Of a DNA stretch of 64,000 nucleotides, positions 20,741 through 49,694 are shown in pieces (positions within the stretch are counted from its first letter, which is position 1; each line of letters starts with the position of its first letter). This DNA is from Macrostomum lignano. Lineage: Eukaryota. The notes under the pieces were generated by a model, which was not told the origin of the DNA, ran no database searches, and was given only the letters and a program-made list of their open reading frames with translations. A program made the translations under genes and the position numbers. The stretch lies in contig NIVC01000748.1 in the NCBI GenBank assembly GCA_002269645.1, forward strand, positions 1 through 64,000, written 5' to 3'.

Positions 20741-21565
20741 TTAATCGAACAGAGACAGGCACTCGCAGAGGGCACCTCGCAGGTCCGGATCGTTCTCCCA
20801 GAAGTCAGATATCTTGCTGGTTTTATACTTGCCGAGAGTATTCTCCCTATCCAAATAGTTGCTTGGCTCCTTCTCTGCCCAGTAACTGGCGTTGAACGCG
20901 ATGTTGCAAGCGACCCAGTACCAGCCATCGGCAGCATGCGCACTTCCAGGTGCTTGAAAGCCTCCAACAAAGAAGTAGCCAATGCTGTAATTGTTGTAGA
21001 TGAAGTCCAAATGCTGCAGCTCAGTAGTGCTCGTCATGTCAGCCATGATCGACAGGCTCCTTTGCCCTGCTGCCACGACATTGATGCTGGACTCGAAACG
21101 TAGTTTAGCCTGTACTTCACTCCGCACAGGTCGTCTCCGTAGCCAGAAGGACACAGCGCGCCCGCCTCGAGTCCCGGCTGCTGCTTCACAAACACCCGGC
21201 CTCTCCTGGAGCAGCCGCAGTCCCTCACCGACTTGCTGCACTTGTCGAACACGAACAGCTGGCACGGACCGTCAGCCAGGCTGAACGCCTGACAGTGCCG
21301 GTTGCGGCTGCACATCAGCGAGCAAGAGAGCTCGTCGGTAGCCATGCCGAAGGTCTGCACAAACTCAGGGTTGATACAGAGAAATCCATTGATTGGTTTG
21401 AAAGAAACCTCGTTCGAACAGTCGTCCTGAGCAGTTCCATAGGTAACCAGCAGGTGCAGCAGTGAACAGATCAACGCCACTCTAAAGTGTAGACCTAGTG
21501 AGTTAATTTTTTGAGCGCATGAAATCACAGAAATTTGCCTCAATTTACCGTAGCTTGTAGTCCAT
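20741..21565 (-). pseudogene. PAN/apple + C-type lectin gene copy 1 (frameshifted)
   Basis: Exon1 21549-21565 (MDYKLR), 67-nt GT-AG intron, exon2 20741-21481. Signal peptide, PAN-type C-x3-C-x5-C-x-AF-x6-C-x-L, and CTLD (FVGG, WYW, EPS, LCEC). Frameshift at ~21055. Confidence 0.85.
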
Positions 21566-22314
21566 CGTTTCAATTTTCCGAGGCATGTAAATTAAGTGAC
21601 ATCCGGCCTAGAACTATATACGAGTACCCATCATGCCAATTCGCTTTGATTGGCTGCTACTCGCGCGTATCTATTAATTTTATTTGGAAGTGAATTTTGA
21701 GACTTTAGCTGGAAGTCGCTGACTAAAAGTAATTTTCAAAGTAGTTCGTACATTCATGACTATCTTGCAAAAAGTCGGAACGTACGTCTTGCACATTTTA
21801 GAAACGTCACGGGCAAGGACGCTGATTTACAGTAAATAATCCAGTCACTGCTACTGTTGTCCAGAGTACACAGTCTTGGCAGAAGAGACGAGATGACTAG
21901 AGAACTGCACTCACCGCTGCTCTAAAAAGAACTTCGTAGTCGGAAAGACTCTCAAGCGAAAAAAGCTTGTCAAATTACCGGCGTAACTTTCGACAGAATA
22001 TCTGCAGTTGAAAACATTTGTAGCATTCTTTAGTGCTGAATAGAGTAGTACTGTTCTAAACGATTTCTATTTTAAGACAACTTTCTTTTGCGTGAAAATT
22101 CATCATTAATATTTTAGTCGACAGGTAAATTTTTAAAAACTTAAGGCGCAAAGAAACTTTCAGGTTTTGCGGAAACAAAACTCATTTTAATAATATATGC
22201 ATAGCTAATGCTGCTTTCACATTGAATGTGTACCCTATACACAGTGTATACACAATGCGGATACGAAGTTGGTTTTTCTTCCGGTAAAACTAATATTTCA
22301 TTTAGCTGCGCATG

Positions 22315-23147
22315 TCAGTCGAGGGGAGACCAGCATTCGCACAGGACGGCTCGTGGGGTAGCGGAGAAGTCTCTGAAGTCGGACAGCTTGTCGTGATCGA
22401 ACCACCTTCCGATAGCATTCTCCGGATCCTCGGGCTCTCCGCTGCCCCACAGGCTGGCGTCAACAGAGATGTTGCAGCCGACCCAGTACCAGCCGCCTGC
22501 TGGCTCCGGGCTGCCAGCCGGCTGGAGGCCGCCCAGCCAGAACGAGGTGCCGCCCGCCCGGCTGTCGTAGATCGAGTCCACGTGGCTCATCTCGGAGGCG
22601 TCCACCACGTCGGCCATGATCACCAGACCGCTCTCCGACTCGCACAGGCGTCTGCTCGGCCACCAGAAATCGGCGTTAAAGTGCAGCTTGTACTTCACTC
22701 CGCACAGGTCGTCTCCGTAGCCAGACGGACACAGCGCGCCCGCCTCGAGTCCCGGCTGCTGCTTCACGAACACCCGGCCTCTCCTGGAGCAGCCGCAGTT
22801 CCTCACCGACTTGCTGCACTTGTCGAACACGAACAGCTGACACGGACCGTCAGCCAGGCTGAACGCTTGGCAGCGCCGGTTGCGGCTGCACATCAGCGAG
22901 CAAGAGAGCTCGTCGGTAGCCATGCTGAAGGTCTGCACAAACTCAGGGTTGATACAGAGAAATCCATTAATCGGGTTGAAAGAAACCTCGTTCGAACAGT
23001 CGTCCTGAGCAGTTCCACAGGGAAGCAGCAAGTGCAGCAGTGCACAGAGCAGCGCCACTCTAAAAAGTAGTGAGTCAATTTGTTTTTTTCTGCCGCATGA
23101 TCAAATCGCACAAAAAACTCCTCAATTTACCGTTGCTTGTAGTCCAT
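22315..23147 (-). CDS. PAN/apple + C-type lectin gene copy 2 (intact, 253 aa, secreted)
   Basis: Exon1 23131-23147 (MDYKQR), 71-nt GT-AG intron (cg|gtaaat...tttag|a), exon2 22315-23059. Signal peptide, PAN motif, CPSGY, FWLGG, WYW, WGSGEPE, LCEC; no TM. Confidence 0.9.
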
Positions 23148-25019
23148 AATTATTTTTCTGTTTCCAATACCGAAATGTTTGAAATAGGTACTACATGTGT
23201 GTCGAAAATTTTGACTATAGTTCTGAATTATATAGCTGAAAAATCTCCCCTGTCAGTCTTGGCGTTTCACTACTTTACCAACATCCATTCGGGAGTGAGT
23301 TTTGAAACTTTGATGTGCCTTGCTCCTACTAAGTGTTCAGACCATTAGCAAATTGACTGGCTTGATGCTGCTATTATAAAATGGCGCTCTTCCTAGAATT
23401 TGCTATCCTTTTGTCCTCCTTGGCCCAATATCGGTAGATTCCTGAATATCATCGCTAAAAGCTTTTTGCCATATAACCAATCCATGTTTCTATGGTAACA
23501 ACAGCCTCCCTCCAACGGAGATCGCAGCTGTATTGCTAATGGTGTGCGCATTACCGAATCTGCGAGAATGGGTCGTCACCGAACCTGAGATAATGGTGAT
23601 AATTTGATGTAAAATTTCATGCCTAGTTTTGCGGTCATATTCATGAAACGCTTTATTATAACGACGTATACTAAACGCAACTTATTTTTATTTGGTCGTC
23701 GATTATGCCTTTTGGTTTGTCAAGCCGTGTTTTCAAACTTACGAAATACGACTATTAAGACGTTTTGTTTATGCGATTATTTGATGTAATGAAATGATGT
23801 AATGAAGTTTAAAATGAAATGGCGAATTGAAATGCATGCAGATATGGATATAAAATTGAAAAGCTTCACAAGAAGCAAAATTGATTAAATATAGCGTAAT
23901 AAATTATCTACCATGAACTCATAAGTTCCTGCTTTTTAGATCGGCACTTTTCTTGCCATTTGCAATGCCCCACTAACTATATACAGCGCATAGCCCCTGA
24001 TCTACTTAATGACATCGGAATGCAGAACCTATCAACCCAAAAAAGGGCATGCTATTGTGGTAGTGCGAAGTAAAACGCGAGTGATAGTGGCAAGAGTTAT
24101 AGTGAAAAAAGTAAAAAAAGCCGCAGTTTTAACTAAAATGTTACAGATTTGATTTGTGATCTCGCAATCTGTCCTTCTCAACTTTTAAGGACCCCCAGCT
24201 ATAGCTGGGCAGGCTGGTTGCTCTTTCTGCGTGTGTCGTTCCGATTTCCATCTCGCAGACAATCGTCGGGCCGGGCGAAAACGAAGCCAAAATAGCATTG
24301 AGATTGTGTATCAAGGCGCTGACCGACAAGCTAAGGAACTTTCACGATGTCAGTCGTTCATCTAGTCTGGTGCCCGACGTCCGCGAGGATCTGCAGTGTC
24401 GCCGCGTGCTTGTCTGGACTGTCTTTAATTCTGTGAGGGTGATTCGTGATTCTGCAGTCCAAGAGAGGCAACGGCGACAGACAAGTTCGAACAGCAGGAA
24501 GTTGACTCTTCAAGATCAGCGACGAGCGAGATACCAACACGGCACTGTATTGTGGCGGGGCCTAGCTGGTCCGTCCAAGCGACCTGTTGCGCCCTCGGTG
24601 ACGTCAGCTGGCAGGCCGAGTCGTACTGCCCTCAGCCGGTGCAGGAGGTGCTGCTGCTGACTCTGCAGTCACCCAGCTACCGGCACGTACATTTACTCCG
24701 CCTTTCGTCGACTGGGTTCCAGCTGAGGCCGGTTTGCCAGATCAAAGTTCGGTGGCGAAAATCGCGATAAAAATAATCAAAAGCACGTGACTTTGCAAGA
24801 CTGTTGTCTGGCGTTAAAAATTGGCTCAAAGTAGGGAAAAGGGGCAAAAAACGCAAAGAGCCGCCTGCTAGTAGTCCACACGGCAAGAGCTCAATATGAT
24901 AGTATATTAAAAGTTTTAAAAGAATGAGTCCTCATCAGAAAACTGCAAAATACTTTTTGAGTGGCCCGTGTAAGCATCTGTAATGAATTGGTGTTTGTTG
25001 AAACATCTTGTTCACATTT

Positions 25020-25410
25020 CAACAAGCAAGTTTCTCAGAGGGTGTCACAACTGAATGCAAAACTATTGAGTTGAAAATTGACGCGAATAAAAAGATGGCT
25101 TTCTCTAAGCAGCCTGTCTATCAATTCTATTGTTTACCTGCGAAATTTAGAGTGGCCTCACGTCAACAAAGCAACCCTGGCAGGTTCCTCAGGCATGAGG
25201 ACTACATGCTTCTTTCCAGGTCACTCAGGGTTACAAAAGAAATTGTCAGAATTAGTTGCAGCCATCATTCAACATCAAATGCGAAGAGCTCTTGCTACTC
25301 ACCTGCCCACAGATACTCGAGGCAGATGCATCTAGGAGAACAGAATAAGGAGAAATGCAAAGCCCTGTGGAAAGTATGCAGACCTCTTTTGTGCTATAGT
25401 TGTCGCTGAA
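25020..25410 (+). mobile_element. Possible degraded piggyBac-like transposase C-terminus
   Basis: Across two frames: EGV..., TRIKRW...SINSIVY, QMRRA and RGRC...RRNA...C..C..LCYSC loosely follow the piggyBac GGVD / RKTNRW / INSFIIY / Cys-rich tail order. Stops and frameshifts are present; recognised by eye only. Confidence 0.3.
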
Positions 25411-26089
25411 AAGTAGAAAACAGAGAACAGATACGAAGTTATCCACATTCAGGGACGAAATTCACGAATACCTCAAGGTGATGCGGATGTGAATACCGTG
25501 AGCGGAGGTTGATTTCTCCACCGGAGATTACCCGTGTCAAATGGGTCACTCGAATGACGATTTACTCTTATGCTCTTATGTCATGTACGTCCTCTAGTTT
25601 TAAAAAAGGCAAAACCTTCATCTCAGTCGAGTTTCCATAACAGCCCAGTGCACAATGTTGAATTAATGAACGATACGTCAAAATAGTAAGACTTTTTGGA
25701 ATTGCTAAATAGAAAGAAAAAGCAAACCAGCTGTCACTAGAAGTGAAGAAGCAGACTTCATTTCAATTTATTATGAAAAATATTTTGATTTTATTTGATT
25801 CATTTTGATTTTAGCTCGTAATGGTACTTTAGGTAAATAACAAGGCGCTGCTGAAAACGCTCAAATCCCTTAGTGCTAAAGAAACTCATTACTTTATATT
25901 ACGATAATTAATTGAAAATTTCTCTAAAAGCAAATCGATAGAGATTAAAATTAATAATAAAAATGAGCCAACCTAGACGAGGTCACCTGGAACGTCACGA
26001 ATAAGTCGGTTGTCTACAAACTGCGCAACAAAGTTAAATGGAAAGGTAAAAATTAGCCTGCTTAAATATTGTAAATTTAGCTGGGGATG

Positions 26090-26816
26090 TTAGTCGAAGG
26101 GAGACCAGCATTCGCACAGGACGGCTCGTGGGGTAGCAGAGACCTCTCTGAAGTCGGACAGCTTGTCGTGACCGTTCCACCTTCCGATAGCATTCTCCGG
26201 ATCCTCGGGCTCTCCGCTGCCCCACAGGCTGGCGTCAACGGAGATGTTGCAGCCGACCCAGTACCAGCCGCCTGCTGGCTCCGGGCTGCCAGCCGGCTGG
26301 AGGCCGCCCAGCCAGAACGAGGTGCCGCCCGCCCGGCTGTCGTAGATCGAGTCCACGTGGCTCATCTCGGAGGCGTCACCACGTCGGCCATGATCACCAG
26401 AGCTCTCCAACTCGCACAGGCGTCTGCTCGGCCACCGCAGAAATCGGCGTTAAAGTGCAGCTTGGTACTTCACTCCGCACAGGTCGTCTCCGTAGCCAGA
26501 CGGACACAGCGCGCCCGCTCGAGTCCCGGCTGCTGCTTCAAAACACCTGGCCTCTCCTGGAGCAGCCGCAGTCCCTCACCGACTTGCTGCACTTGTCGAA
26601 CACGAACAGCTGGCACGGACCGTCAGCCAGGCTGAACGCTTGGCAGCGCCGGTTGCGGCTGCACAGAGCGGCACAGCCGATCTCAGAGTGCGAGCCAGGT
26701 GGAGTTTCAATGAAGTCGCTCCTGATGCACAGGTAGCCTTTGATTTGTCTGTAGCTTTGTAGCACTGCACCTGGAAGTCCAAACGCCAAAAGGATGATCA
26801 CCAGCTTTGCTGACAT
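26090..26816 (-). CDS. PAN/apple + C-type lectin gene copy 3 (several 1-2 bp indels; possibly assembly errors near the gap)
   Basis: ATG 26816 with signal peptide MSAKLVIILLAFGLPGAVL. Core and CTLD are near-identical to copy 2 apart from about six small indels between 26380 and 26545. Lies ~300 bp from the N gap. Confidence 0.8.
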
Positions 26817-27128
26817 TTGATTTTTCGTAGCGCGGATATGATCGGTGAGTTAAAAGTCGGTAAAAATTAGTTGAAGCACGAGACGGACGGGTGGTTACTA
26901 AATGGAATGTTTTGTTTTATCCAACGCTCACCGAATTTTAATGCTATGAAAGAAAATCTACCAGAGAACCTCCATGCTTGTTCATATCAAAAAACTTTTC
27001 TGTTGCGAGGTTCGGGGAGTGTGGATTGCAATGGATACCAGCGTGGGCCGGATTGGCTGGGCCACGGAGTTCTAAACAGAGCACCTGAATTGTACAATGA
27101 AGTACAAGAATCAATCACTTAATTAAGT

Positions 27129-27213
27129 NNNNNNNNNNNNNNNNNNNNNNNNNNNNNNNNNNNNNNNNNNNNNNNNNNNNNNNNNNNNNNNNNNNNNNNN
27201 NNNNNNNNNNNNN
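27129..27213. other. Assembly gap (85 N)
   Basis: Run of N. Confidence 1.
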
Positions 27214-28589
27214 ACGAGTGAACGTGAAGGAATTCCATTGTCGGATGATTCATCGTGCAGGAATGCACAAAACCGTGCAGGAATGCATTTCTGCGCCTAA
27301 TGCTTTTTCAGTGAGATTTTACCATAGACATCCATTCCTGCACGCAAAAGAGTGCAAGAATGCCATTCTTGCATGGAAAATCAGCCGACAATGAGTATAT
27401 ATAGTAAAATGCATAGAAATCTTCTTTTTAATGCTGTGCTTTTAATTTTTCGAATCTCAGCAAACAAATTATATTCCCGAACTCAGCGTTTCTAGCTCTT
27501 TCCAGCAATACAAGGCTCTCTTCTGAAAGTGAAAAACTCGAAGCAAAAATAACAATTGAACATTCCTGCTTTAAAGCATTCAAATTCATAAAGGTGTACA
27601 TTCAGCGCCAGTTACAGTGAGAGGCCTGCAAGTTGATCCATTAAAATTAACAACCAAGCCAATGCCCAGGACTAATTGAATAGCGACACCCGCCCTTCAA
27701 TTTCAGTATCTAAAATGTGTTGCGCAACCTTTCAACGCTTGTAGCTCTCCACGCGAGTGTAGAGAACCAATGCTATAGTTGGCACTGAGTTATGATGCAA
27801 TGCAATTCCATCGGCAGTCAGACTGCTTCTCAATCGGAAAGAACTGTTTGAACTTTAAAAAACGGGGTAAAAAATCGAGTTTTTCGAATATTTAAGCCCG
27901 AAAAATAAAGCAATTTCTTAGCAAAATTTTGTGTACCAGCGCACCATCAATACGCATCGAATGCAGAAAACCCCACGAAATTCCGACCATGTAGAGTGAA
28001 GTTAAGCGAAGGTTCCTATAGGTACATAGTTTTGATTTTTAGTATATTGGAGGATTTGTTCCACTAGCAATTCGACACTAACTATTTTCAACGCGAGAAG
28101 CGGATTTTTTCCAGCTGAAACTTTTCCCACACGACCCCAATGTTCGGACGATTTGCCAGCTGGATTAAAGCACAGGTTTAAATCTTTGTCTCATTCAATT
28201 GTCTGCCAATATCATTCAGACAGGAAATCGCTATTAAAATTCATAGATGAGTGACGTAAACTCCTGATCGACTCAACAAGAGAGACGTTCTCCTCATCCA
28301 GCCCAAAACAATCATAACCAACGGCATTCTTCGGTAATAATAAAAAAGAAGTTTGTAGCAGTATTAATTTTCCTTTTAATCAATTTATCGACGGATGCGT
28401 GAATTTATAGAAGCGCATATTACGAGTATTTATTAAGTCTAATTGTCAAGAATTTTATTGTTTTCCTTGAGAATTACCAAGCACTGTTGCATTCGTTACT
28501 CACAAAATGCATTCAATTTAGTACGGGTACTTAAACAGCATAGCAACCGGAGAATATCGAGCTCTAACATAGAATGCCAACTGGCTTTT

Positions 28590-28900
28590 TGACCATAGAC
28601 AATGAGTTAGACCTTTGAGTTTTGACCATAGACAATGGGTTGGACTTCTGACCATAGACGATGGTAAGCCATTGGTAAGTTAGGCTTTTGACCATAGACA
28701 ATGAGTTAAGCATTTGACCATAGACGAGTTCGGCCTTTGACCATAGACAATGAATTAGACCTTTGACCATAGACAATGAGTTAAGCTTTTGACCATAGAC
28801 AAGTTAGGCCTTTGACCATAGACAGTGGGTTAGACTTTTGACCATAGACAATGAGTTAAGCTTTTAAACATAGACAAGTTAGGCCTTTGACCATAGACAA
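28590..28900. repeat. Degenerate ~25-30-bp minisatellite (TTTGACCATAGACAATGAGTT...)
   Basis: Recurrent TTTGACCATAGAC core. Confidence 0.9.
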
Positions 28901-29133: not shown

Positions 29134-32100
29134 TTAAGAACAAGCGCCAACAGTTCCAGACCCAACCAGCTCCATCAGTTGAGTCCGAGTAGCAGCGTCC
29201 AACGATTCGAATAGTCGCTTAGTCGCCTCGTTGCCTAGCGACGAATTCAAAGCTAGCAGCTCCCTGCGCAGATGCTCCTGCACTGAAAGTCGCTGGACAC
29301 AATCGGCCGCGTTAGCCAGCATTTTCGAACCTCGTGACTAGATTTGTCTTCTTCTTGCTGTTGCTGTTGTTGCTGCTGTTGTTGCTGCTGCTGCTGTAGA
29401 CCATCCGAAGCGTTATCAGCAGTGCCGGAGCAGTGAACCAACACGCCGACAACTGCTTCAATTATGTCGGCAAACACAGCGCCAGCTGAGTCAGTCTGAT
29501 TATTATTAACAAGAGCTGCAAAGCCGAAAGCCAGCAGCCCTAATCCGAGCAGTTTCAAATCCCGCAGTTTAGCCGAACGTTTACAAGCTGCAATCCAAGC
29601 GGCCAGGAGAGCCGATGGCAACGCTTGGCTGGACTGCGACGGCAAAGCGGCCAGCAGCAGCAGCGGCTGACTGAGAGCCACCCGGCTCACCAGCTTCCAG
29701 AAGGCCACCCGATTGGCGGCCAGGCAAGAAGAAGCGGAGGCTACGTCCAGGCAAAAGCTGGATAGTAGGCCCGGCAGTAGGGGGACCAGCAGCTGGGCAG
29801 ATGGTTGAGGCGACACCTGCAGAGACAGATAGGCGATTCAATGGGACAGAGTAGCTCCCATCACGACCCCTGGTTCGATTCCGTGCATGCCTGAGATAAT
29901 TTATCGCTCAGGTGTCTATTTATCTTTCTAGATAAGACTCACCTTTAGCAAATCGTTGCACAGCAGCAGAGGCTGCAGGCGGCGCTCGAGCAGCAGCCCG
30001 GCACGGCTAGGCAAGCTTGGCAGGCTGCCAGCAGAGCGGCGCCGTGAGCGGCCAAGTAGCGATCGCAGTCAAGGTAGGCGCACACCTGCAGCAGTCTGCG
30101 CTCCGGAGCTTCCATGCAGGCGCGCTCGGCGATGCGAGAGTGCAGACAGGCCAGGCTCTGAGCGAAGCAGTCCTGGGTTGGCGGGGATGGCGATTATTGC
30201 TTAGAGGTGGACAGTAGTTTAAAAGAGGTGGTTGGTGCCGGTATGTATCGAAATCATTTAAGAGAAAGAAGAGAAAGTGGGACAATGAGGGCGAGGGGGA
30301 GAGGGTGAAAGGGTAGAGAGAGAGAGGAGTGTGAGAGGGGGAGGGGAGAAAGTAAGATGGGAGAGGGCAGATGGTGAGAGGAGAGACGATGATAGGAGGG
30401 AGGGCAGAGGGTGAGAGGGAAGAGATGAAGAGGGTGAGAGGGGAGAGTGAGAAAGGAGAGGGTGAGGGGGGAGAGAGCAGAGGATGAAAGAGAAGAGAGG
30501 AAGAGGGTGAGAGGGAAGAGGGTGAGAGGGAAGAGGGTGAGAGGGAAGAGGGTGAGAGGGAAGAGGGTGAGAGGGAAGAGGGTGAGAGGGAAGAGGGTGA
30601 GAGGGAAGAGGGTGAGAGGAGAGGGGATAGGGAATGGGGTGAGAGGGTGAGAGGTAAGAGGGTGAGAGGTAAGAGGGTGAGAGGGGAGAGGGTGAGTGGA
30701 GAGGGTGAGGTGAGAGGAGAGAAGATGAGAGGGTGACAAAGCCGCACCTGTTCAGGATAGGTGTGCAGATGGCAGAGCAGGTACAGCAGCAGGTGCAGGC
30801 CGCCCTCCCAGAACAGGTCAGGCCCGGTGAGGCAGGCGTGGGCCAGAGGCAGGGCCAGATGGCCCAGGCTGAGATCGCCCAGCTTGGCAAGCTCGCACAG
30901 CACGGACAGCACGGCTAGGCGCGCCTGGTCCCCTCCAGCCGAGTCCCACATGCCCGGCAGGTGCGGCACAAGAGCTGGCAGGCAGGGCCGCAGGTCCGCT
31001 ACTGAATATCTGGAAATGATTTTGCAAAACCATAAATTTGATAATTGTTCAACACATAACAGATCATCACATTCACATAGCATTTAATTGTTTGCATGGG
31101 GCTTTAGGGGAAATGGGCATATCACACAATGTACATTTCCCCATCTACCTCTGTCTCGCCGTCTACCTCTGCCAGTCTCACCTATCTACCTCTCCCAGTC
31201 TCACCTATCTACCTCTCCCAGTCTCACCCTATCTACCTCTCCCAGTCTCACCTATCTACTTCTCCCAGTCTCACCTATCTACCTCTCCCAGTCTCACCCT
31301 ATCTACCTCTCCCAGTCTCACCATATCTACCTCTTCCAGTGTCACCCTATCTACCTCTTCCAGTCTCACCCTATCTATCTCTCCCAGTCTAACCCTATCT
31401 ACCTCTCCCAGTCTCACCCTATCTACCTCTCCCAGTCTCACCTATCTACCTCTCCCACTGTCACCCTATCTACCTCTCCCAGTCTAACCCTATCTACCTC
31501 TCCCACTGTCACCCTATCTACCTCTCCCAGTCTCACCTATCTACCTCTCCCAGTCTCACCCTATCTACCTCTTCCAGTGTCACCCTATCTACCTCTCCCA
31601 GTCTCACCATATTTATCTCTCCCAGTCTCACCATATCTACCTCTCTCAGTCTCACCATATCTGCCTCTTCCAGTCTCACCATATTTACCTCTCCCAGTCT
31701 CACCATATCTGCCTCTCCCAGTCTCACCATATCTGCCTCTTCCAGTCTCACCATATTTACCTCTCCCAGTCTCACCATATCTGCCTCTTCCAGTCTCACC
31801 ATATCTACCTCTCCCAGTCTCACCATATTTACCTCTCCCAGTCTCACCCTATCTACCTCTCCCAGTGTCACCCTATCTACCTCTCCCAGTCTCACCCTAT
31901 CTACCTCTCCCAGTCTCACCCTATCTACCTCTCCCAGTCTCACCCTATCTACCTCTCCCAGTGTCACCCTATCTACCTCTTCCAGTCTCACCCTATCTAT
32001 CTCTCCCAGTCTAACCCTATCTACCTCTCCCACTGTCACCCTATCTACCTCTCCCAGTCTAACCCTATCTACCTCTCCCACTGTCACCCTATCTACCTCT

Positions 32101-35100
32101 CCCAGTCTAACCCTATCTACCTCTCCCACTGTCACCCTATCTACCTCTCCCAGTCTCACCTATCTACCTCTCCCAGTCTCACCCTATCTACCTCTCCCAG
32201 TGTCACCCTATCTACCTCTCCCAGTCTCACCCTATCTACCTCTCCCAGTCTCACCCTATCTACCTCTCCCAGTGTCACCCTATCTACCTCTCCCAGCTTC
32301 AACTTATCTACCTCTCCCAGTCTGTTTCTATCTACCACTCTCATTCCCTCCCTATCTACGAGTCGTACCTCTCTATCTCGCTCTCACCTGAGAAAGCTGG
32401 CCACCACAGTGAGCAGGTGCACCTGGGCCTGATCAGACCTGACCTGGGCCAGCAAACCAGCCAATCCGCTGAAGCAGTCGGCAGCGTGAGGCTGGAAAGC
32501 ATTAGCATCCAAATTCAAGCTGGTCAACAGAGAATGAGCCAGCCTGGCAGCTTGCAGTCTCAACAGCGGATGCCTGCTAGGCGACATCAGACTGGCCGCT
32601 GACTGACAAGCAGCGCCAAACAATTCCGTTGGCAAAGCGTCTGGCACATCGGCCCAAGCTGCTAGCAGCATTACAGCTCGGCGCTTCAATAATAGCGACC
32701 ATTGATGGTTAGATTCGTCGTCTACTTGCAGTAGCATAGGCAGTATATTGCATGCCTGGCATAGGTCAGGAAATCTGACGCATTTGGCCAGATCGTACGG
32801 ACAGGAGGCTAACAGGGTCAGGGTGGCTTCCAGTTCGCGCGGAGACGCGGTTGAGTTGGCTGCCGAGTTCAGCTGCGCCTCAACGATGCGTTGCACCGCA
32901 GCTAGAGCTCGTTGCGGCAGCTCTTGTAGCAGCGACTGGAGCAGGGCCTCGCCGGCGTGCCGGCCGGACAACAGGTGGGCCTGGGGGTGAGGGAGGCATG
33001 GACGGCTTTTGAAGCTATATAGACACCTGGATGGGAAAGCATCTTGTTGTAGTGACAAGCCTGATGTAAAGAACTTGATAGTTTGCAAGAAATACTCATA
33101 TTTAATCTCAACCCCTTAATTGATTGTAGTCATCAATTATAGTCATTAATTGGTTGGTAATCAGATGGTAAGAGCGTACGAGTATGACAGCTTTGGTTGG
33201 CAACCTTAGAGATGGCGCCTCTGGTGATGGCACCTCTGGTGATGGCACCTCTCGTGATGGCGCCTCTGGTGATGGCATCTCTGGTGATTGCATCTCTGGT
33301 GCTGGCACCTCTGGTGATGGCACCTCTGGTGATGGCATCTCTGGTGATTGCATCTCTGGTGCTGGCACCTCTGGTGATGGCGCCTCTGGTGATGGCGTCT
33401 CTGGTAATGGCGTCTCTAGTGCTGGCACCTCTGGTGATGGCATCTCTGGTGATTGCATCTCTGGTGATGGCACTTCAGGTAATGGTGCTTCTGGAGATGG
33501 CGCCTCTCGTGATGGAGCCTCTGGTGATGGCACCTTCGGTGATGGCACCTCTGGTGATGGCATCTCTGGTGATTGCATCTCTGGTGCTGGCACCTCTGGT
33601 GATGGCGCCTCTGGTGATGGCGTCTCTGGTAATGGCGTCTCTAGTGCTGGCACCTCTGGTGATGGCATCTCTGGTGATTGCATCTCTGGTGATGGCACTT
33701 CAGGTAATGGTGCTTCTGGAGATGGCGCCTCTCGTGATGGAGCCTCTGGTGATGGCACCTTCGGTGATGGCACCTCTGGTGATGGCATCTCTGGTGATTG
33801 CATCTCTGGTGCTGGCACCTCTGGTGATGGCGCCTCTGGTGATGGCGTCTCTGGTAATGGCGTCTCTAGTGCTGGCACCTCTGGTGATGGCATCTCTGGT
33901 GATTGCATCTCTGGTGATGGCACTTCAGGTAATGGTGCTTCTGGAGATGGCGCCTCTCGTGATGGAGCCTCTGGTGATGGCACCTTCGGTGATGGCGCCT
34001 CTGATGATGGCACCTCTGGTAATGGCGTCTCTGATAACGCCCTAGAAATCAACCCCCACCTCATTCCAATGAAAGCTGCTGGCTACACTGATGCCGCCAA
34101 GATTTGCTCACTTTTTCCGGAGTCTGAGCGAATACAGCCTCATCAGGTTGAGTCAGAGCTTCGTCTAACTCATCGCTAGTTGAAGCGAGATGACGGCGGA
34201 GCAAGCCGAACACGAGGGCGTCGAGTGCGGCATCCGTTAGCAGCTCGTTGAGAGTCTGACTTGCTTGATGCAGTTGATCGCCAGCGTCTATTGGGGAGGA
34301 GGGGAGGAGCGAGAGTGCCTTAGGATTCACAGAATTCTGAGCACAACACGCAGACATGCACCCTGACTTTCTAATGGTCAGACATGTACACTCACTCAGC
34401 CTTGGGGAGTTGACCATCATCATCGAGCGACGTTAGAGTCGCGTTAAAAAACTAGACAACTCACCTGGGGCAGGGGAACCATAGGACTGCACGCACTGCG
34501 ATATGAGATTGAGGCATTGTACATTGATACGCCTGTCCCTGTACTCGGCGCTACTATCATTGTTTGGCCAATTTGCATCGCTACCAAACGAAATGCCAAC
34601 GGCCAGTTTCACTGCCGGCTCCATCAGCTGGGCGAAGGCTTGCGGCGCGTGAGTTTGACAGCGCAACAATAGGCGGCCCAGAGAAGTCACTAATGGTTCC
34701 AAAGGAGCATCAGGACTGTTCAAGGCCAGGGTTGGCAGGCATTCGATGACGCAGCCTAACAGACTGACTGGCGAGTTGTCGCCAGACGGTGTACTTAGAG
34801 AGGCTAAGCCGTGGCTAATCAGGTTGGTGCAGCACTTGGTGTACAGTACGGTGCACCAGATGTCGCAGGATGGGGCCGCTCCGGTGCTGCAGCTGAGGAT
34901 TTAGGTGACGGTTGGTACAGGTGACGGTTGGTACAGGTGACGGTTGGTACAGGTGACGGTTGGTACAGGTGACGGTTGGTACAGGTGACGGTTGGTACAG
35001 GTGACGGTTGGTACAGGTGAGGGGCGGTACAGGTGACGGTTGGAACAGATGAGGGGCGGTACAGGTGACGGTTGGAACAGATGAGGGGCGGTACAGGTGA

Positions 35101-36044
35101 CGGTTGGTACAGGTGAGTGGCGGTACAGGTGACGGTTGGTACAGGTGACGGTTGGAACAGATGAGGGGCGGTACAGGTGACGGTTGGTACAGATGAGTGG
35201 CGGTACAGGTGACGGTTGGTACAGGTGAGGGGCGGTACAGGTGACGGTTGGTACAGGTGAGTGGCGGTACAGGTGACGGTTGGTACAGGTGAGGGGCGGT
35301 ACAGGTGACGGTTGGTACAGGTGAGGGGCGGTACAGGTGACGGTTGGTACAGGTGAGGGGCGGTACAGGTGACGGTTGGTACAGGTGAGGGGCGGTACAA
35401 TTGACGGTTGGAATAGATGAGTGGCGGTACATATGACGGTTGGAAAAGTGAGGGGCGGTACAGGCGTTCATAGCTGGTATTTACCTAGCCGCTAGCGATT
35501 GCAATCTGGGCACCAATCGGCCAATCAGAAACGGAACCAGATCGCAACTAACCGAACGAAACTGCTGCCTATGCTTTGGCAAAGTTTTCGACATCAACGC
35601 TTTAACAATGTGATGAAGCAATAATAGGCTACGCGATTGCCATTGCTCATTGCCAGCTGTGCTAGGATCGGTCAAGCAGGCGCTCAAACTAGTCATTAGG
35701 TCGGGCCAACGCTCCGGCCAATCAAATCTGGCCACCAAGCCGGCCGTCATGGCCAGTTGAGTGGCCGCCGGCAACTGCTGACTGTGCAGTCGCAGAGCAG
35801 CCTCGCGGATGAGACTTTTATCCTCCGGCGTCACTTTGAATCGCCACCGGAGCCGGACTAGATTTTTAATACAAATCGACGCTAATAGGCGAACTTCGTT
35901 GCTAGGATGCTCGGCGATTATTGGCAATAGTTCGGCTACGAAGTTTGGCGATGACTGCATCGACTCGAGTTCCTCTAGGCGGGGCACGTGACCTTGGTTA
36001 ACGACGCTGCTGCACCAGGCGGCAAGACTGCCGGAGTTTAGCAT
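29134..36044 (-). CDS. IPO11: Importin-11 (karyopherin-beta), 7 exons, ~977 aa after correcting two 1-bp deletions
   Basis: Exons 35485-36044, 34465-34892, 34112-34287, 32388-32980, 30748-31009, 29943-30172 and 29134-29816, all GT-AG with matching phases. IBN_N region ARFDWPERWPDL / LLLLHHIVKALMSKTL parallels IPO11 ARLDCPRQWPEL / LLTFYHVTKTLASKRL. C-terminal LKLLGLGLL and RKML. Frameshifts near 30000 and 29323. Confidence 0.88.
30270..30735. repeat. GA-rich tract with 15-bp unit GAGAGGGAAGAGGGT (IPO11 intron 5)
   Basis: Tandem periodicity. Confidence 0.93.
31140..32335. repeat. 24-bp minisatellite CCCAGTCTCACCCTATCTACCTCT (IPO11 intron 4)
   Basis: Tandem periodicity. Confidence 0.97.
33210..34035. 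repeat. 15-bp minisatellite CTCTGGTGATGGCAC with 225-bp higher-order repeat (IPO11 intron 3)
   Basis: Diagnostic variant CACTTCAGGT ends at 33480, 33705 and 33930. Confidence 0.97.
34905..35465. repeat. 16-bp minisatellite GTACAGGTGACGGTTG / GTACAGGTGAGGGGCG (IPO11 intron 1)
   Basis: Alternating variants. Confidence 0.97.
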
Positions 36045-43300: not shown

Positions 43301-46300
43301 GAGATGAAAGAAAAGAGTACAGAGGACAGAATGAGAGAACATATAAGACAGTAAAGATGACAGATGAAAGAGAGGGGATGAGCTGAGCTGAGAGCAGAGA
43401 CGAAAATGAACAGACGAGAGATGGGAGAGTAGAGAGAACAGAGGAGAGATAAGAGATTACAGAGACTAGAGGAGAGACAAAGGGAGAGAGAGAGAAGTGA
43501 GTCAAGAAGAGAGAAAAGAGGAGAATGGAGGGGAGAGAGTAGAGAGGAGAAGAAAGATGGGAGAGGAGAGATAAGAGAGAGAGGGGAAGCAGAGAGAGGG
43601 GGGAAGCAGAGAGAGAGGGGAAGCAGAGAGAGAGAGGGGAGCAGAGAGAGAGGGGGGAATCAGAGAGAAATGAAAAGAGATAAAAGAGAAGAGAGAGAAG
43701 AGAAAGGAGAGATCAGAGAGCAAATACAGACGAGAGAGAAGAGAGGTGAAGGAAAAGACGGGAGAAGAGTGGGAGGAGAGGAAAGAGAAAAGAAGAGAAA
43801 AGAGATGAGATAAGAGAGATGAAAAAGAAGAGAAATGAGGGAAGATACGAGAGAAGAGGGGAGAGAGAGAGGAGAGAGGAAAGAAGAGATGAGAGGAGAG
43901 AGAGAGAGGAAAGAGTAGAGAGGAGAGATGAGAGAGTAGAGGAGAGAGTTAAGAGAAGAGAGAAAAGAATAGAGAGGAGAAGGAAGAGACGAGAGAAGAG
44001 GGGGGAGAGGGGAGAGGAGAGAAAACGAAAAAGTAGAGAGGAGAGAGGAGAGGAGAGAGAAAAGAAGAGACAAGAGATGAGATAAGAGAGATGAAAGAGA
44101 AGAGAGATGAGGGAAGATACGAGATAAGAGGGGAGAGAGGAGAGAGGAGAGAGGAGAGAAGAGGGACGAGAGAGAAGTCGAGAAGAGAGGAAACAAAGAG
44201 ACGATAGAAATTTTAAAGGATCCAAGGGACGTAGGGAGAGTCAGGGAGAGGCCAGAGTTTGCCAATACATGTTTTAGAGTTAGACAGACATTGCCTGACA
44301 TTCTGCACAAGCTAACACCCAGCTAACAGTATCAATGTTTGCCTCAAATCCAAATTTTACATGAATGTGTCCATTTTATGTCTACCTCTATCCTACTAAC
44401 TATTAACAAGTTTTTGTTTGTGTATGGCCTTAGATTTCAGAATACATGCAAAAGTAGTTCTGGGGATTGGAATTCCCTGGGTTCAAAATCTGCGGGTTTC
44501 AACAGCTTGTTATAATTATAAAATAATTAGTACACTTTCCATAAAACCTCAAAATATAATCAATTAAATATATATGCATCAGTTAATTATTCTAATGTAA
44601 GCATGCCATTATTCAACTGAACAATATCACTTATTTTGCACTATTTTCAGTGACAGTGACATAGCTAGGATTTTGAAAAGGGGGATAGCTTTAAGGGCCA
44701 AAATTTTAGACTAATAAAATAGTCTTTTGTATTTTTTTGCTAAAATAAGCATTTAAAATTGCCAATACCATGTTTATTAGGCTAAAAAAACTTTACTTTG
44801 TTCAAATCAGAATAAAGCCAGTAGATGTCTGTCCTGACTAGGACATTCTAGGACCTAGGAATTTGTAGAAATATTGTTTATAACACTTTATTAGTAATTT
44901 ATGAGTGAAATAGGCCAATTTTTGGCAATTTTGCTAAGTCTAAGTCACTTTATTTTGCTTTTTTTCTTCAAAAACCTCATTTTTGTTTTTTATAAATCTT
45001 CAAAATGGGGGGATATATCCCCATATCCCTCTAGTTATGCTACTGACTATTTTACACTTTTTGCTAGCTTATCTAAAGCTGAGTTAGATCTAAACATTTT
45101 ATAGAAATTGATTTTTAGCTACTAAAATAGTAGCTATTATATGCAAGAATTTTTTATTGCTTGATATGTCATGTCATATGAATAAGGTCAGATCATGGAT
45201 AGACCAAGTGGCTGAGAATTGGATATGTGGTATAGTGATTAATGTTAACACTTATAATGATATCTGACATACTAAGAAATCTTGATAGGCTCCTCCTTAT
45301 CACCTATAGTCCAGATTATGGCAAGCTTACGCTGGAATTAAAATTCTAGTTTCTTTAATTCTACAGTGATATAAATTGAAAAAAAATTAAAAGCAAAAAG
45401 TTGCTTTTAATTTTGCTTTGCCTCCCCCATAATAAAATCTATGGCAATGTCCCTGTCTAGTGTTGAGGAATTAGAGTTGCTAATATAACAATTAACAATA
45501 AAAATGAACTCAATTATAGTTTACAATATATACAGAATTTAAGTTATAAATTTATAAATAAAGCAAATTCTTAATTCAAATCAAAGATAATAAAGATAAT
45601 ATTATATCAAAGATAATATTTTATATGATTAAAACTGAAATGGGTAATATCAAGTAATTTTTTATCATAAAATAATATAGCCTAATAATAACAAAGGTGC
45701 AAAGTAACTAGATAGGCTTATATTACTATAGTATAGACAAAAATTTAGCATTGATATAAAAATATAAATATGATAAGCTTGCATGCATGGCAGCTTTCCT
45801 ATATATGCACAACCTTGGGAATCACTCAGCCATTTCTATTGGCAACAAACACATGTAAGTCGCTATTGGCTGAGTGCAGTCACATGACTACTATTCCGCC
45901 CAATAGCAACTTACATGTGTGTGTTGCCAATAGAAACAGCCGGGTGAATCCCTAGGTTGCACCCAAGCATAAGCTTTCCATGTCTACCTAGCGTTTTAAT
46001 TGTGTACATGGCAGCCACATATGTAATAAGTCATATACTATTCAAATTTATTCGCAAATTAACAAAAAATAGCATTAGCAATGAATTGAGACTACATTGG
46101 GCATGCATGGTGTACATGGGATAAAACATGTTAAAACAGTATATATTGTAACAATTTTTAATTAGGTTTAGTTAGTGGCAATGGCAATGAGCAGATTTGA
46201 GGGAAAGGGTCCTATTCACTAGGCCTATATTGTAGCCAACTGCGGGCTGCCATGCATGCAACTAAAGTACTGGGTGGACGGCTGCCGTGCAGGCATGCAC

Positions 46301-46571
46301 GCAAGCTCTCCAATATAAATAATATCAATCAATGCTGGCCCAGTGGCCCTACCTAAATATTAAAAGAAAAAATGAGGACAGATGGTCAGATGGATAGGGG
46401 CACAATACAGGTACTAGGTAGTTTTAATAAATAGCTATCAGCATAGGTTCCAATATATTCATATCATTAGTAGGCCCTTGAACAATGTCATGATTCTTGA
46501 TTATTTCTATTAAACAAAATTGATTGTACCTTCTTTCCTTTAGTTGACTCGAGATTGAATTCCTCATCCAT
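37312..46571 (-). CDS. IFT43: Intraflagellar transport protein 43, 7 coding exons, 205 aa
   Basis: Exons 46530-46571, 41329-41403, 40979-41061, 38956-38981, 37873-37966, 37710-37785 and 37312-37533 splice in frame. Motifs ARMGRRA, RRGGWG, IPELKEE, APSIAVNRVATYRELD, EIDLKLLT and WDWDRLFAEV match IFT43 hallmarks. Confidence 0.92.
38090..38452. repeat. ~68-bp tandem repeat x~5 (IFT43 intron)
   Basis: AAATACAGA anchor at 38095, 38163, 38231, 38298, 38366 and 38434. Confidence 0.95.
39600..40448. repeat. 108-bp tandem repeat x~7-8 (IFT43 intron)
   Basis: AACCATAAAATCGATAAATTCACACC anchor recurs every 108 bp. Confidence 0.97.
41460..41990. mobile_element. Possible non-autonomous DINE-1/Helentron-like element
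   Basis: CTGT/GTGT microsatellite near the end, followed by CCAAATTTTGCAC and CGATTGACTTCAAATTTGACAC-type motifs; resemblance by eye only. Confidence 0.3.
42700..44210. repeat. ~1.5-kb polypurine (GA) low-complexity tract (IFT43 intron 1)
   Basis: Almost only G/A on the + strand, with internal duplications (e.g. ~43802 and ~44075). Confidence 0.95.
44654..45045. mobile_element. Possible MITE with ~17-bp imperfect TIR
   Basis: CAGTGACATAGCTAGG ... CTCTAGTTATGCTACTG; no clear TSD. Confidence 0.35.
45800..45971. mobile_element. Palindromic MITE, hAT-like (172 bp, 8-bp TSD AGCTTTCC)
   Basis: Long imperfect inverted repeat; TSD at 45792-45799 and 45972-45979; paralogue at 61765. Confidence 0.8.
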
Positions 46572-47999
46572 TTATCTGAAGTGTTTCAAGTTATTGTTAT
46601 AAACGTAAAGTTCACCTAGGTCCTAGGCCTACTAATTAGAATCCGAGCAAGTGTAAAATGAACAAACAGCAGCAACAAAGCTAACTATTGCATAAAAAAA
46701 TTGCTTTTATTCACCGAAACTTAGCAACTGAATTTTGAGGGAATTCCTATATTTTTATATTTACACATAGAAACAGCTTTAATTGATACAAAGTATTTTT
46801 AAATCACATTACCTTATTCAAATAAAATACTCTGTAAGAAGATAAAAATTCATTTTGCTATTTAGTATTTGTTTAATCTACCTAAAACAGCGTACGGATT
46901 CTTTTGCCACAAGCACAGTTTTTTATCATTCTGAGCTCTATACGAGAAGTCAATAATTAAATAACTGAAGTAGTTTAAGTGCAGTTTTTCCCTAAAGGGT
47001 CCTGAACCTATTGAAAGTTATAGTCTGCATTTTTCTGTCTTGAGAAACGAGCATTTAGAAACTAGCAAGTTTCAAACTGGCCGTGTGATTGTTGTAGTGC
47101 GCACTGGCGCAAACATGCCACTGCTAAGAAATGCCATTGAATTGCTACTTTCAGTAGTAAAAAAGAACAGTACAATATAGAGCGAATGTCCAGGAGTTTA
47201 TTTACCGATACATATCAAGACTATTATCCCGGATCCGTTCGCGTCTTGATCTGCATGAGTGCTGCAAATTAAGTCACGTAAAATTGAGCTACATTTATAG
47301 ATAAACTTTGCTCGAAGGCATTCCACTCTAGAAGACATTGACTTGTTGATTCTTAAAACCGATCTTATACTTAGGTAAACTTACCAGATCTGCTGGGCAA
47401 CTTGCTACATCGTACAAGATCTTAATCATAGCTTTTATATCTTTTTATAGCTTCGAATCGCATATTTTCTTTTTTGTCCCATTTTATCATAAAATAAAAT
47501 ATAGTTCAGCTAGAACACTTTAGCCAAATGAATAACAAAACAAATGTACGTCCGATTTTAGAAGATCCTGCAAGAACCGAGCAGATTGAGAACATCTGCT
47601 AAGAATGGCACAGAGACAAGATCTGCTAAGTTTGAGAAACAGAATGTCCTCTAGGGATCAGTATACAATGGGGCCTTGCAGCTCCAACGCATGCAAGAAG
47701 TAGCGATCAATTGATTGCCACATGCATGCATGCGATATGTAAACAAAAAGCTTTTTGCATTTATAGCATGCACAGCAGGAAGGCAGATCCACCCAGTCTG
47801 ATCGAGTCCATTAACATGCATGCATTCAGCTACCTGCAGGCTTCGTATTTGTAAAGTCGTGTTCAGGGCAGCGGAATTCACACTTAGTTGCTAAGTAATT
47901 ACAGGGTAAATATGCATTCATTCTGTTCCTCGATCCAAAGATTTTTGTATTAGTATAGGTGCCTGACTCGATTCGGTTGGCCTGGTTGATCGTCATTGT

Positions 48000-48375
48000 T
48001 TCAGCTGCTCCTGGGCGTTGAGAGTGTGCATGTACATGCCTCACGATGAGAAAGTGAGAGCTGCTGTACACACTGTATACGAGCTACAGCAGGGTGTCAG
48101 CTCGGGTGCCGAGTACCTGCCCCCAATTGGGCCAGATGTGCGACCGACAGCTCAGCCGCAGCTATTGCTGCGTACGGCTGTTCGGTCAAGGACTGGGGGG
48201 GGTCGCCACACACCCTCAATTACCCCAGCTAATGCTGGCACCCATTTTACAGCTGGGTGAACTGAAGCAGTGCAGAGTTAAGTGCCTTGCTCAAGGACAC
48301 AAATTGTTCCGAGTGAGTCGGCAATCGAACCCCCAATCTTCAAGTTGTGAGTCCGATGCTCTAATCACCTGCAGG
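48000..48375 (-). mobile_element. tRNA-derived SINE
   Basis: Minus-strand A-box-like TGATTAGAGC and B-box-like GGTTCGATTGCC, followed by TGTGTCCTTGAGCAAGGCACTTAAC and CACCCAGCTGTAAAATGGGT, segments typical of metazoan SINE bodies. The 3' end is uncertain. Confidence 0.6.
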
Positions 48376-48938
48376 CTATTGTCTACAAAACCTACTGATT
48401 AAACTAAATCAATACATAAAGCCAAAGATTGTCAAGCCTTTAGGATTTGACAACTGCATGATTGAAGTTCTGAAGTTTTATTAGGGATAAATATTCAAGG
48501 TTGAGTTAAACTGCAATGAAAAAAAGCAGAAATCGAGTTGATCCTTAAATGTAAAAAGGGAATGGGGATCACAGGTGGGAAACGGTCGAGGTGTCAACCA
48601 TAAGGGCCGACATCACATAACACAGAGAGGCGAAGTAAACTGTTTGTAAATCTTACTGTATAAGAGAAAAACCCCACATTGAACTTGCAGGACCAGACAC
48701 TATTCTAAACCATTCTAAAAGAAGCATTATTAATTTGCGTTTCAGGTAATAAAATTGACAGAAATTAAATCATCAAATAGGATTTGATAGCCACTCATAC
48801 GAGTATTGATTTAAATGACAAAACAGAAAGTAACAGAAGAATTAACGCGACTGACGCCAACTTAATGGCCGACATAACATACTGCTTTTCTGATCACTCC
48901 AGCTTATTGTGATCATTCAGCTTGCCAGATTTACTGGG

Positions 48939-49694
48939 TCAGTTGAATGGCGACACGCATTCGCACAGGACAGCATTGGCGAAGGTGTCGGGAGCATCGT
49001 GGAGTTTATTTGTTTTCGGTAAATGAGCCACCACGTTTTCAATGTGACCATGATCGTTGGGCTGTGCGGCCGCCCACAGGCTGTTGTCCAAAGTGATGCT
49101 GCAGCCGACCCAGTGCCAGCCTCCGGCGGGCTCAGCACTGCCGGCTGGCTGAAACCCTCCGAGATAGAAAGCCTTTCCTGAGCTGCGCAAATCGTGAATC
49201 TCGTCCACGTGGCTCATCTCGGTAGCGTCCACCACATCGGCCATGATCACCAGGCCGCTCTCCGACTCGCACTTCTGTCTGCTCTGCTGCCAGTTTCCAG
49301 TCTCATTGAGCAGCTTGTACTTCACTCCGCACAGGTCGTCTCCGTAGCCAGACGGACACAGCGCGCCCGCCTCGAGTCCCGGCTGCTGCTTCACAAACAC
49401 CCGGCCTCTCCTGGAGCAGCCGCAGTCCCTCACCGACTTGCTGCACTTGTAGAACACGAACAGCTGGCACGGACCGTCAGCCAGGCTGAACGCCTGACAG
49501 CGCCAGTCGCTGCTGCACCAGAAGGCGCAGCCGGCTATCGAGGCAACGTCAGGGAGGCTCCGAACGAACTGGCGTTTGATGCAGAGGCTGCCGTTGATGC
49601 TCGAGTACGAAGCCACGTTAGCTGCCTGCGCAACTTTGAGCAGGAAGAGAAAAACAGAGAACTGCTGGGAGTTGCTCAGCCTTGATGGCGACAT
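48939..49694 (-). CDS. PAN/apple + C-type lectin gene copy 4 (intact, 251 aa, secreted)
   Basis: ATG 49694, preceded by a likely 5'UTR intron (donor gtaagt ~49790, acceptor ~49700). Signal peptide, PAN motif, shared core, FYLGG, WHW, QPN, LCEC. Confidence 0.9.
   Translation of the reverse strand: MSPSRLSNSQQFSVFLFLLKVAQAANVASYSSINGSLCIKRQFVRSLPDVASIAGCAFWCSSDWRCQAFSLADGPCQLFVFYKCSKSVRDCGCSRRGRVFVKQQPGLEAGALCPSGYGDDLCGVKYKLLNETGNWQQSRQKCESESGLVIMADVVDATEMSHVDEIHDLRSSGKAFYLGGFQPAGSAEPAGGWHWVGCSITLDNSLWAAAQPNDHGHIENVVAHLPKTNKLHDAPDTFANAVLCECVSPFN

Follow-up and report, generated by a model that had tools for sequence, protein, structure and literature searches.

A near-identical core shared by four mosaic PAN and C-type lectin-like genes of Macrostomum lignano, probably homogenised by interlocus gene conversion

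Four paralogous genes (g1–g4) for small PAN/apple and C-type lectin-like domain (CTLD) proteins lie on the minus strand of a 64,000-nt stretch of the Macrostomum lignano genome (GenBank assembly GCA_002269645.1, contig NIVC01000748.1, positions 1 to 64,000; hereafter the window). A tblastn search finds exactly four copies of the family there, all in the one 64-kb window. The genes share a core of about 200 nt that is near-identical in every pair, silent sites included, and that lies between flanks which group the genes in conflicting ways. To judge from these comparisons, the core was probably homogenised by DNA exchange limited to this constrained segment (interlocus gene conversion or non-allelic recombination), while g2 would owe its hybrid make-up to one or two longer exchanges. 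The case is a clean yet ordinary example of mosaic (partial) concerted evolution, and not a new diversity-generating system.

Self-BLAST and a four-way MAFFT alignment delimit a near-invariant core of 196–208 nt that is 95.6–98.0% identical in all six pairs. Pairwise BLAST E-values are 1e-90 and below, which rules out chance similarity. The core occupies 21105–21314 in g1, where it encodes the C-terminal half of PAN, the linker and the N-terminal hairpin of the CTLD, 22683–22892 in g2 (from the alignment), 26457–26665 in g3 and 49310–49519 in g4, always on the minus strand. The g3 copy contains two 1-nt deletions and one 1-nt insertion; the g4 copy is essentially identical over 49310–49503 and has three differences in 49504–49519. 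A first-pass annotation of this DNA had described a near-invariant 185-bp cassette in four copies. All four were found again at the positions given, on the minus strand, and its counts of differences were reproduced exactly (2/185 for g1/g4 and 6/185 for g1/g2), although the block proved larger than 185 nt. Over the same 185 nt, g2 and g4 also differ at 6/185, and g3 differs from each other copy by 4 mismatches and 3 gap columns. The annotation had further placed g1 nearer to the distant g4 than to its neighbour g2; the counts agree, but the contrast is not significant (Fisher P = 0.28). There are just two parsimony-informative sites in the core, and they group (g1,g4)(g2,g3).

The edges of the core are abrupt, with identity stepping within 8–16 nt. 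For example, at the 5′ edge of g3, seven of the eight columns up to column 263 are mismatched, after which g3 equals g2 in every column until 316. At the 3′ edge, identity falls in columns 466–474 in all pairs. The encoded peptide, CQAFSLADGPCQLF...LCPSGYGDDLCGVKY, is the most constrained of the family; in g4 (residues 66–126) it extends from the latter half of PAN across the linker to the first hairpin of the CTLD. The 5′ edge of the core therefore falls inside one domain and its 3′ end inside the next: the former splits the cysteine core of PAN and the latter lies within strand β1 of the first CTLD β-hairpin. A metagenome scan with a 26-nt invariant segment of the core gave 0 matches.

Outside the core, the genes fall into different groups on the two sides. 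In the nucleotide alignment the N-modules of g1 and g2 are 93.6% identical, whereas all other pairs share 42–50% (g2/g3, 42%). The C-modules of g2 and g3 are 97.3% identical; either is ∼66% identical to that of g4, and g1 is 51–59% identical to the others (g1/g2, 58%). The flanks of g4 show 47–66% identity to the other copies. Thus (g1,g2) in the N flank clashes with (g2,g3) in the C flank, and the genes can be typed as A-X (g1), A-Y (g2), B-Y (g3) and C-Z (g4). Only g2 is a recombinant combination among the four, joining the 5′ part of a g1-type gene to the core and 3′ part of a g3-type gene. In addition, g1 and g2 have in common a 17-nt exon 1 (MDYK..) followed by a GT..AG intron of 67 or 71 nt, while g3 and g4 are intronless. 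The first-pass annotation had recognised this shared A-type N-module with its small intron, and had called the N-modules of g3 and g4 unalignable. This is correct for the DNA but not for the protein, where the N-modules are homologous (35–43% identity, E 1e-4 to 1e-8), which means that g1–g4 share one architecture. It had likewise seen the near-identity of the g2 and g3 C-modules, the strong difference of g1 and the partial difference of g4, all of which stand; an amendment is that g1 and g3 are frame-broken in this assembly.

Shuffling of exons or domains was considered as a source of the mosaic and rejected, because no introns flank the core and its borders lie inside PAN and the CTLD. A single open reading frame (ORF) spans the N-module, core and C-module both in exon 2 of g2 and in g4, so the core is not an exon.

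The near-identity of the core extends to synonymous sites. By the Nei-Gojobori (NG86) method, synonymous divergence (dS) in the core is 0.024–0.129 among the window copies, with nonsynonymous divergence (dN) of 0.007–0.015, while dS in the discordant flanks runs from 0.78 to saturation. As an outgroup control we used the same core in two relatives from outside the window (L001 and L002), whose core DNA is 74–77% identical to the window copies; against these, core dS is 0.58–0.88. Codons that specify the same amino acid in both sequences give a similar result. Between g1 and g4, such codons differ at 1/60 in the core and at 29/52 in the flanks (P = 1.4e-11), and the remaining discordant pairs return P values of 1e-5 to 1e-6. 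Between the window cores and the outgroups, 58 of 178 (33%) differ (P = 7e-8 compared with the 1/60 of g1/g4). Near-identity that includes synonymous sites, combined with incongruent segment histories, requires recombination or conversion with breakpoints at the core edges.

These data bear directly on whether the core could have been kept by protein-level purifying selection and/or codon bias alone, without DNA exchange. Its peptide is the most conserved in the family and its GC content at third codon positions (GC3) is high (0.83, with a range of 0.82–0.84, as opposed to 0.68–0.69 in the outgroup cores). However, silent divergence in the core is 10–50-fold below that of the flanks and ∼10-fold below that of the same codons against the outgroups, and the sharing of flanks is incongruent. 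Nor does base composition suffice: the C-modules of g2 and g3, which are as GC3-rich as the core, still differ from g4 in 38% of the codons that specify the same amino acid. The silent-site data already contradict this reading, and we assign it almost no probability. The segment-wise dS proposed in the first-pass annotation points the same way, in that the core (0.02–0.13) is not at the normal level seen against the outgroups (0.58–0.88), so it does not reflect protein constraint alone. Purifying selection on the core peptide is real, yet the codon comparisons show that it is insufficient by itself to account for the silent-site identity. The elevated GC3 of the core is compatible, if weakly, with GC-biased conversion.

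A function of the core at the nucleotide level (e.g., an RNA structure, a regulatory or antisense element, or a small-RNA target) could also preserve silent sites, and long antisense ORFs do overlap the genes. We nonetheless find it extremely improbable. A third (33%) of same-amino-acid codons differ in L001/L002, the core RNA shows no excess structure over shuffled sequences (z = +0.54), and the core has no match in Rfam. Antisense ORFs, moreover, are an expected by-product of GC3-rich coding sequence. Those seen here are 163–252 aa long and run on the plus strand over g2 (22312–23070), g3 (26087–26635) and g4 (49194–49685); they are most likely by-products of the GC3-rich sense codons and not genes.

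We consider it probable that the core has been homogenised by non-reciprocal interlocus (ectopic) gene conversion between these same-strand paralogs. Purifying selection would have left the core alone similar enough for homologous pairing, so that conversion tracts would be confined to it, and each conversion would restore the identity that allows the next one. Gene g2 may then owe its g1-like 5′ part, and its core and 3′ part of g3 type, to one or two longer, patch-like exchanges that had one end inside the core or beside it. The diverged flanks, chiefly the CTLD long-loop region with its EPN-type motif, may be too different to convert, or selection may keep them different. Both signatures of interlocus conversion are present in the window: a tract whose silent divergence is far below that of its flanks, controlled by outgroups, and abrupt edges with incongruent histories. 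This upholds the ectopic recombination or conversion that the first-pass annotation had inferred (core dS 0.02–0.13 versus ∼1 to >3 in the flanks).

Reciprocal unequal crossing-over within the core might instead have been the main process, with the hybrid g2 as its product. Haemoglobin Lepore and anti-Lepore and the red/green opsin arrays are hybrid genes formed in this way, and a misaligned g3 × g1 exchange would yield the array g3(B-Y)-g2(A-Y)-g1(A-X). An anti-Lepore event would leave exactly the minus-strand order seen here, parent-hybrid-parent. The copies all point the same way, and g2 switches at the 5′ edge of the core, that is, in a shared homologous stretch as in the Lepore and opsin arrays. 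Unlike those arrays, this one has no spacer duplication. Homology between g1 and g2 ends ∼10 nt upstream of the ATG and that between g2 and g3 ∼30 nt past the stop, and the spacers g3→g2 (2.9 kb) and g2→g1 (0.75 kb), which a crossover should have duplicated, share no homology detectable by word-size-7 blastn at E ≤ 0.01. Because homology stops at these limits, conversion in patches fits better than a crossover, which would have duplicated the spacers. Age, too, seems to differ between the two halves of g2, with 19/377 substitutions in the g1-like part and 14/571 in the g3-like part (P = 0.045). Furthermore, a crossover in the trio would leave unexplained the identical core of g4, which lies beyond an unrelated importin-11-like gene. 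Taken together, we regard unequal crossing-over as unlikely.

Several points weigh against conversion as we propose it. The case is based on one assembly sequence, and where a segment has several copies, polishing with short reads can overstate their identity. Two informative sites in the core are too few to fix the direction, number or age of the events. The ends of the longer tracts coincide with gene ends (the ATG, and the stop plus 30 nt), unlike textbook two-ended conversion between otherwise non-homologous loci. Finally, the DNA comparison covers the window copies and L001/L002, which is short of a genome-wide view of the core.

The individual genes differ in condition. Gene g1 (20741–21565) has exon 1 at 21549–21565, an intron at 21482–21548 (67 nt) and exon 2 from 21481. 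Two extra nucleotides at 21050–21051 shift its frame and produce a premature TGA at 21034–21036; the shifted frame of the CTLD is open for >100 codons, to a TAA at 20741–20743. A 29-nt GT..AG mini-intron that would repair the g1 frame was rejected, because the CTLD would lose its conserved W..C start and because 29 nt is well short of the 67–71-nt intron of the family. Gene g2 (22315–23147) is intact, with exon 1 at 23131–23147, an intron at 23060–23130 (71 nt) and exon 2 at 22315–23059, including the TGA stop. Gene g3 (26090–26816, ATG at 26816) lacks the intron and is broken by six small indels (−1, −1, +1, +2, −2, −1) from the core to the early CTLD (26465–26560); once the frame is corrected, g3 contains no in-frame stop. 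Gene g4 (48939–49694) is an intact, single-exon ORF of 251 aa. The indels of g1 and g3 could be either true recent pseudogenisation or uncorrected long-read errors where short reads map to multiple places (for g3, near a contig end).

That contig end is formed by an assembly gap at 27129–27213, which separates the contig with g1–g3 from the contig with g4. The gap falls between genes, 313 nt upstream of the ATG of g3. All four genes lie clear of it, and no reading frame crosses it. Its flanks do not overlap and hold no family-related coding sequence on either side. Since the gap sits between the g1–g3 trio and g4, the linkage of g4 and the distance of 28 kb to it depend on the scaffold join.

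Assembly error is the main residual risk. In a genome that is rich in repeats and hard to assemble, the mosaics or the identity of the core could in principle come from contigs joined chimerically, from paralogs that were collapsed or kept in duplicate, or from short-read polishing that made the copies alike. The Macrostomum assembly Mlig_3_7, for instance, was built with PacBio/Canu, Pilon and SSPACE, and its redundant blocks (≥95% identity) add up to 180 Mb (PMC5730564). Here, g3 lies ∼0.3–1 kb from the scaffold gap, and its six indels cluster in the multi-copy part. Exact-product look-ups for g4 (two start variants), g2 and three related M. lignano proteins (P0001, P0002 and P0007) matched no contigs, and so no independent contig with the g2 or g4 product turned up. 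On the other hand, g2 differs from both putative parents (by 6.4% and 2.7% substitutions), so it is no simple g1/g3 chimera, and every gene has unique flanks. Cross-mapping of reads needs ∼90% or more prior identity; polishing could trim a few percent, but could not create a 97–99% block between flanks of 45–65%. We therefore hold an artefactual mosaic to be clearly improbable. In practice, the locus is one where short-read polishing, gene prediction and orthology calls are prone to error.

Interlocus conversion among tandem paralogs is well documented, although the first-pass annotation had not recognised the arrangement as a described system. Human gamma-globin and RHD/RHCE are familiar cases. 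In the Arabidopsis halleri HMA4 triplicate, tandem paralogs show mosaic divergence under interlocus gene conversion (bioRxiv 10.1101/2025.10.29.685298). The Macrostomum genes resemble paralogs of this type in being same-orientation neighbours with one segment that is near-identical at silent sites, sharp edges and incongruent histories. They differ in that the tract is ∼200 bp long and lies between saturated rather than mildly diverged flanks, that it bridges two protein domains, and that one partner is ∼22–28 kb away, beyond an unrelated gene. The locus shows, in an unusually clean natural setting, how purifying selection and gene conversion reinforce each other: the stretch kept similar by protein constraint is the only one still able to recombine, and it is held near-identical amid saturated paralogs.

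The first-pass annotation had gone further, and cast the core as a hub that swaps PAN and lectin halves to give a combinatorial recognition repertoire. Programmed or rapid diversification of this kind, whether germline or somatic, would make the core a dedicated site for new N/C combinations. It is true that a single core is combined with various kinds of N- and C-module, and that P0007 adds another combination (58/61 core residues identical); a second M. lignano array, in the protein P0006, is also mosaic; and the EPN specificity position differs among C types. Nevertheless, the window holds four copies with one recombinant (g2), two copies (g1 and g3) are frame-broken, and nothing there points to ongoing or programmed reshuffling. 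With one border halfway through the PAN cysteine core and the other in CTLD β1, the core cuts through domains and not between them; it is no neutral hinge, and what is exchanged are part-domains instead of recognition modules. No short tandem or signal-like repeats flank it (the nearest array is 722 nt off), and silent divergence of 3–13% implies old, rare events. We judge dedicated diversification to be very improbable.

The locus can be compared with known diversity systems. Sea-urchin Sp185/333 (SpTransformer) genes are mosaics of many ‘elements’ with GA/GAT short tandem repeat (STR) flanks, and differ between all individuals (PMC5103432). Like them, the Macrostomum genes are clustered, encode small secreted proteins, have mosaic sequences for which recombination or conversion is invoked, and are difficult to assemble. 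Unlike them, the Macrostomum locus has four copies, one core, three or four flank types and no flanking STRs, and was read in a single sequence. Within the 64 kb we find neither the large repertoire nor the flanking tandem repeats of a dedicated system (Sp185/333, FREP or VLR-like), but four copies and one recombinant. It is tempting to speculate that the core is nonetheless a selected recombination hub across many tandem arrays of the family, which re-pairs PAN N-halves with lectin bodies and possibly uses the broken g1 and g3 as donors, like chicken pseudo-V genes. We think this very doubtful. If true, strains or individuals would each carry their own set of secreted recognition proteins, with roles in immunity, mucus, adhesion or reproduction.

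The products of g1–g4 are small proteins with a predicted signal peptide, a PAN/apple domain and a long-form CTLD, and belong to a Macrostomum-restricted (flatworm) family. A hydrophobic, signal-like segment at all four N-termini suggests that they are secreted. Together with the profile matches and the predicted CTLD fold of g4 described below, this agrees with the secreted PAN-CTLD identity given in the first-pass annotation. An indexed search recovered only five relatives, all of them M. lignano ‘C-type lectin domain-containing’ proteins or Logan contigs. An exhaustive profile search returned 1111 proteins at E ≤ 1e-3, including many of ∼250 aa with the same layout as well as large multi-CTLD proteins. 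In the papers searched we found no description of a Macrostomum PAN-CTLD family, nor of a small secreted fusion of one PAN and one CTLD.

Single window sequences fall below Pfam cutoffs (for Lectin_C, g4 scores 18.8 versus 22.6 bits; for PAN_3 and PAN_4, single window proteins reach 12.8 and 14.3 bits), whereas the aligned family gives significant matches. Lectin_C matches 16 of the 24 aligned members (best E = 2.4e-11), and in the relatives P0011, P0013 and P0015 it lies exactly over the matched stretch. PAN_1 matches 10 of the 24 (best E = 2.1e-7). Against solved carbohydrate-recognition domains (CRDs), the family profile reaches E = 1e-14 (1egg and 2vuv; mannose-receptor CRD4) and, with the phospholipase A2 receptor (PLA2R), 7.5e-32. 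The 3′ end of the core encodes the ‘LCPxGY…C..Y’ hairpin, and it is there that these CTLD matches start. The N-domain profile recovers almost nothing but PAN/apple structures: its list up to E = 10 has 33 chains, of which 32 are PAN/apple proteins by name or align via a PAN core. The best is Eimeria MIC5 (1hky, E = 2.2e-4), and the list also includes the hepatocyte growth factor (HGF) N domain, SML-2, MIC4 and factor XI.

An AlphaFold2 model of g4, built from the 24-sequence alignment, is confident (pLDDT 93, pTM 0.87). Foldseek aligns it to langerin, codakine and mannose receptor (MMR) CRD4 with TM-scores of 0.76–0.85 over ∼138 residues, root-mean-square deviations of 2.2–3.1 Å and a probability of 1.00. 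The Foldseek list is dominated by CTLD matches, and the N-domain fold has no score of its own. In the model the N-domain is β-β-α-β-β-β, with strands at residues 30–36 and 44–47, a helix at 53–61, and strands at 66–70, 76–80 and 96–102. Sequence profiles and predicted fold thus both place the window proteins among CTLDs, and sequence matches argue for a PAN/apple N-domain. Of the features of PAN/apple domains (Eimeria MIC5, the HGF N domain, Sarcocystis SML-2, Toxoplasma MIC4 and factor XI/prekallikrein), four invariant cysteines are present and the modelled β-β-α-β-β-β order is a possible match, although the score of any single window protein is weak (12.8–14.3 bits).

With long-form CTLDs (mannose receptor CRD4, langerin, codakine and PLA2R), the window proteins share the ‘CPxGY...C..Y’ N-terminal hairpin, WxW and the EPN-type position. 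They depart from these in an altered EPN, a replaced WND asparagine and an atypical cysteine pattern in the second half. The EPN or QPD tripeptide and the WND motif form the Ca2+/carbohydrate site of C-type lectins, with the tripeptide setting sugar specificity. The tripeptide reads EPS in g1, EPE in g2 and g3, and QPN in g4 (residues ∼210–215); the family consensus is EPN (‘GEPNN’), and P0007, P0008 and P0009 have QPD. The WND equivalent, placed by alignment to mannose-binding protein A (MBP-A), presumably reads (K)[LI][SH]D, with the asparagine replaced. Given these altered motifs, the window proteins are no more than candidate lectins. What emerges is a family of small secreted PAN + CTLD proteins restricted to flatworms, for which a confident structural model exists. 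It varies at the sugar-specificity position, and its members are worth considering in Macrostomum for recognition in mucus, adhesion, immunity or reproduction.

Across the family, the core peptide is again the most conserved segment. It is 93–95% identical in P0007 and 85–88% in P0001, compared with ≤49% for N-modules and ≤58% for C-modules. At the protein level, P0007 matches the core peptide at 58 of 61 residues and yet has another N type and another C type. P0006 (3072 aa, ‘Apple domain-containing protein’) appears, at residues ∼400–1430, to be a read-through model of at least three tandem PAN-CTLD units plus a fragment, an example of the gene-prediction errors to be expected at such loci. 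Its units C and D are ∼95–100% identical through the centre, while the C-terminus of unit D is nearer to unit A (also at the protein level). From P0007 and P0006, partial homogenisation of arrays seems to be common in the PAN-CTLD family.

Several other genes lie in the window. The unrelated importin-11-like gene between the g1–g3 trio and g4 (29253–36044, minus strand; IBN_N, TPR_IPO11) has introns filled with minisatellites. Directly downstream of g1 lies a single ORF of 702 aa (17444–19552, minus strand) for a Peptidase_M13 protein (neprilysin/ECE-like). A Notch-like gene on the plus strand (∼6866–12928) encodes EGF repeats, three Lin12/Notch repeats (LNR) and a NODP region, and its exons are split by proline-rich-looking minisatellite arrays. 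Exons of a ZMYND8/11-like MYND zinc-finger gene (60882–61607) and of a PTB/PID-domain gene (52439–52897) are both on the minus strand. At the start of the window, a plus-strand ORF of 790 aa (113–2485) encodes the reverse transcriptase, RNase H and integrase of a Ty3/gypsy-type long terminal repeat (LTR) retrotransposon, which seems intact over the part that the window covers.

Minisatellites are very dense from 3029 to 63992, with 35 Tandem Repeats Finder (TRF) rows, periods of 7–225 nt, up to 116 copies and often a strong strand skew (e.g., 8584–9772, 31162–32359, 53062–55433 and 57313–58819); the Notch-like and importin-11-like genes hold many of them in their introns. Such richness is consistent with the roughly 15% of simple and tandem repeats reported for M. 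lignano. Short interspersed repeats at 20250–20368, 48197–48328, 53752–54012 and 60595–60652 are 82–86% identical to M. lignano contig NIVC01001858.1. Two of these sit just 3′ of g1 and of g4, and derive from different elements.

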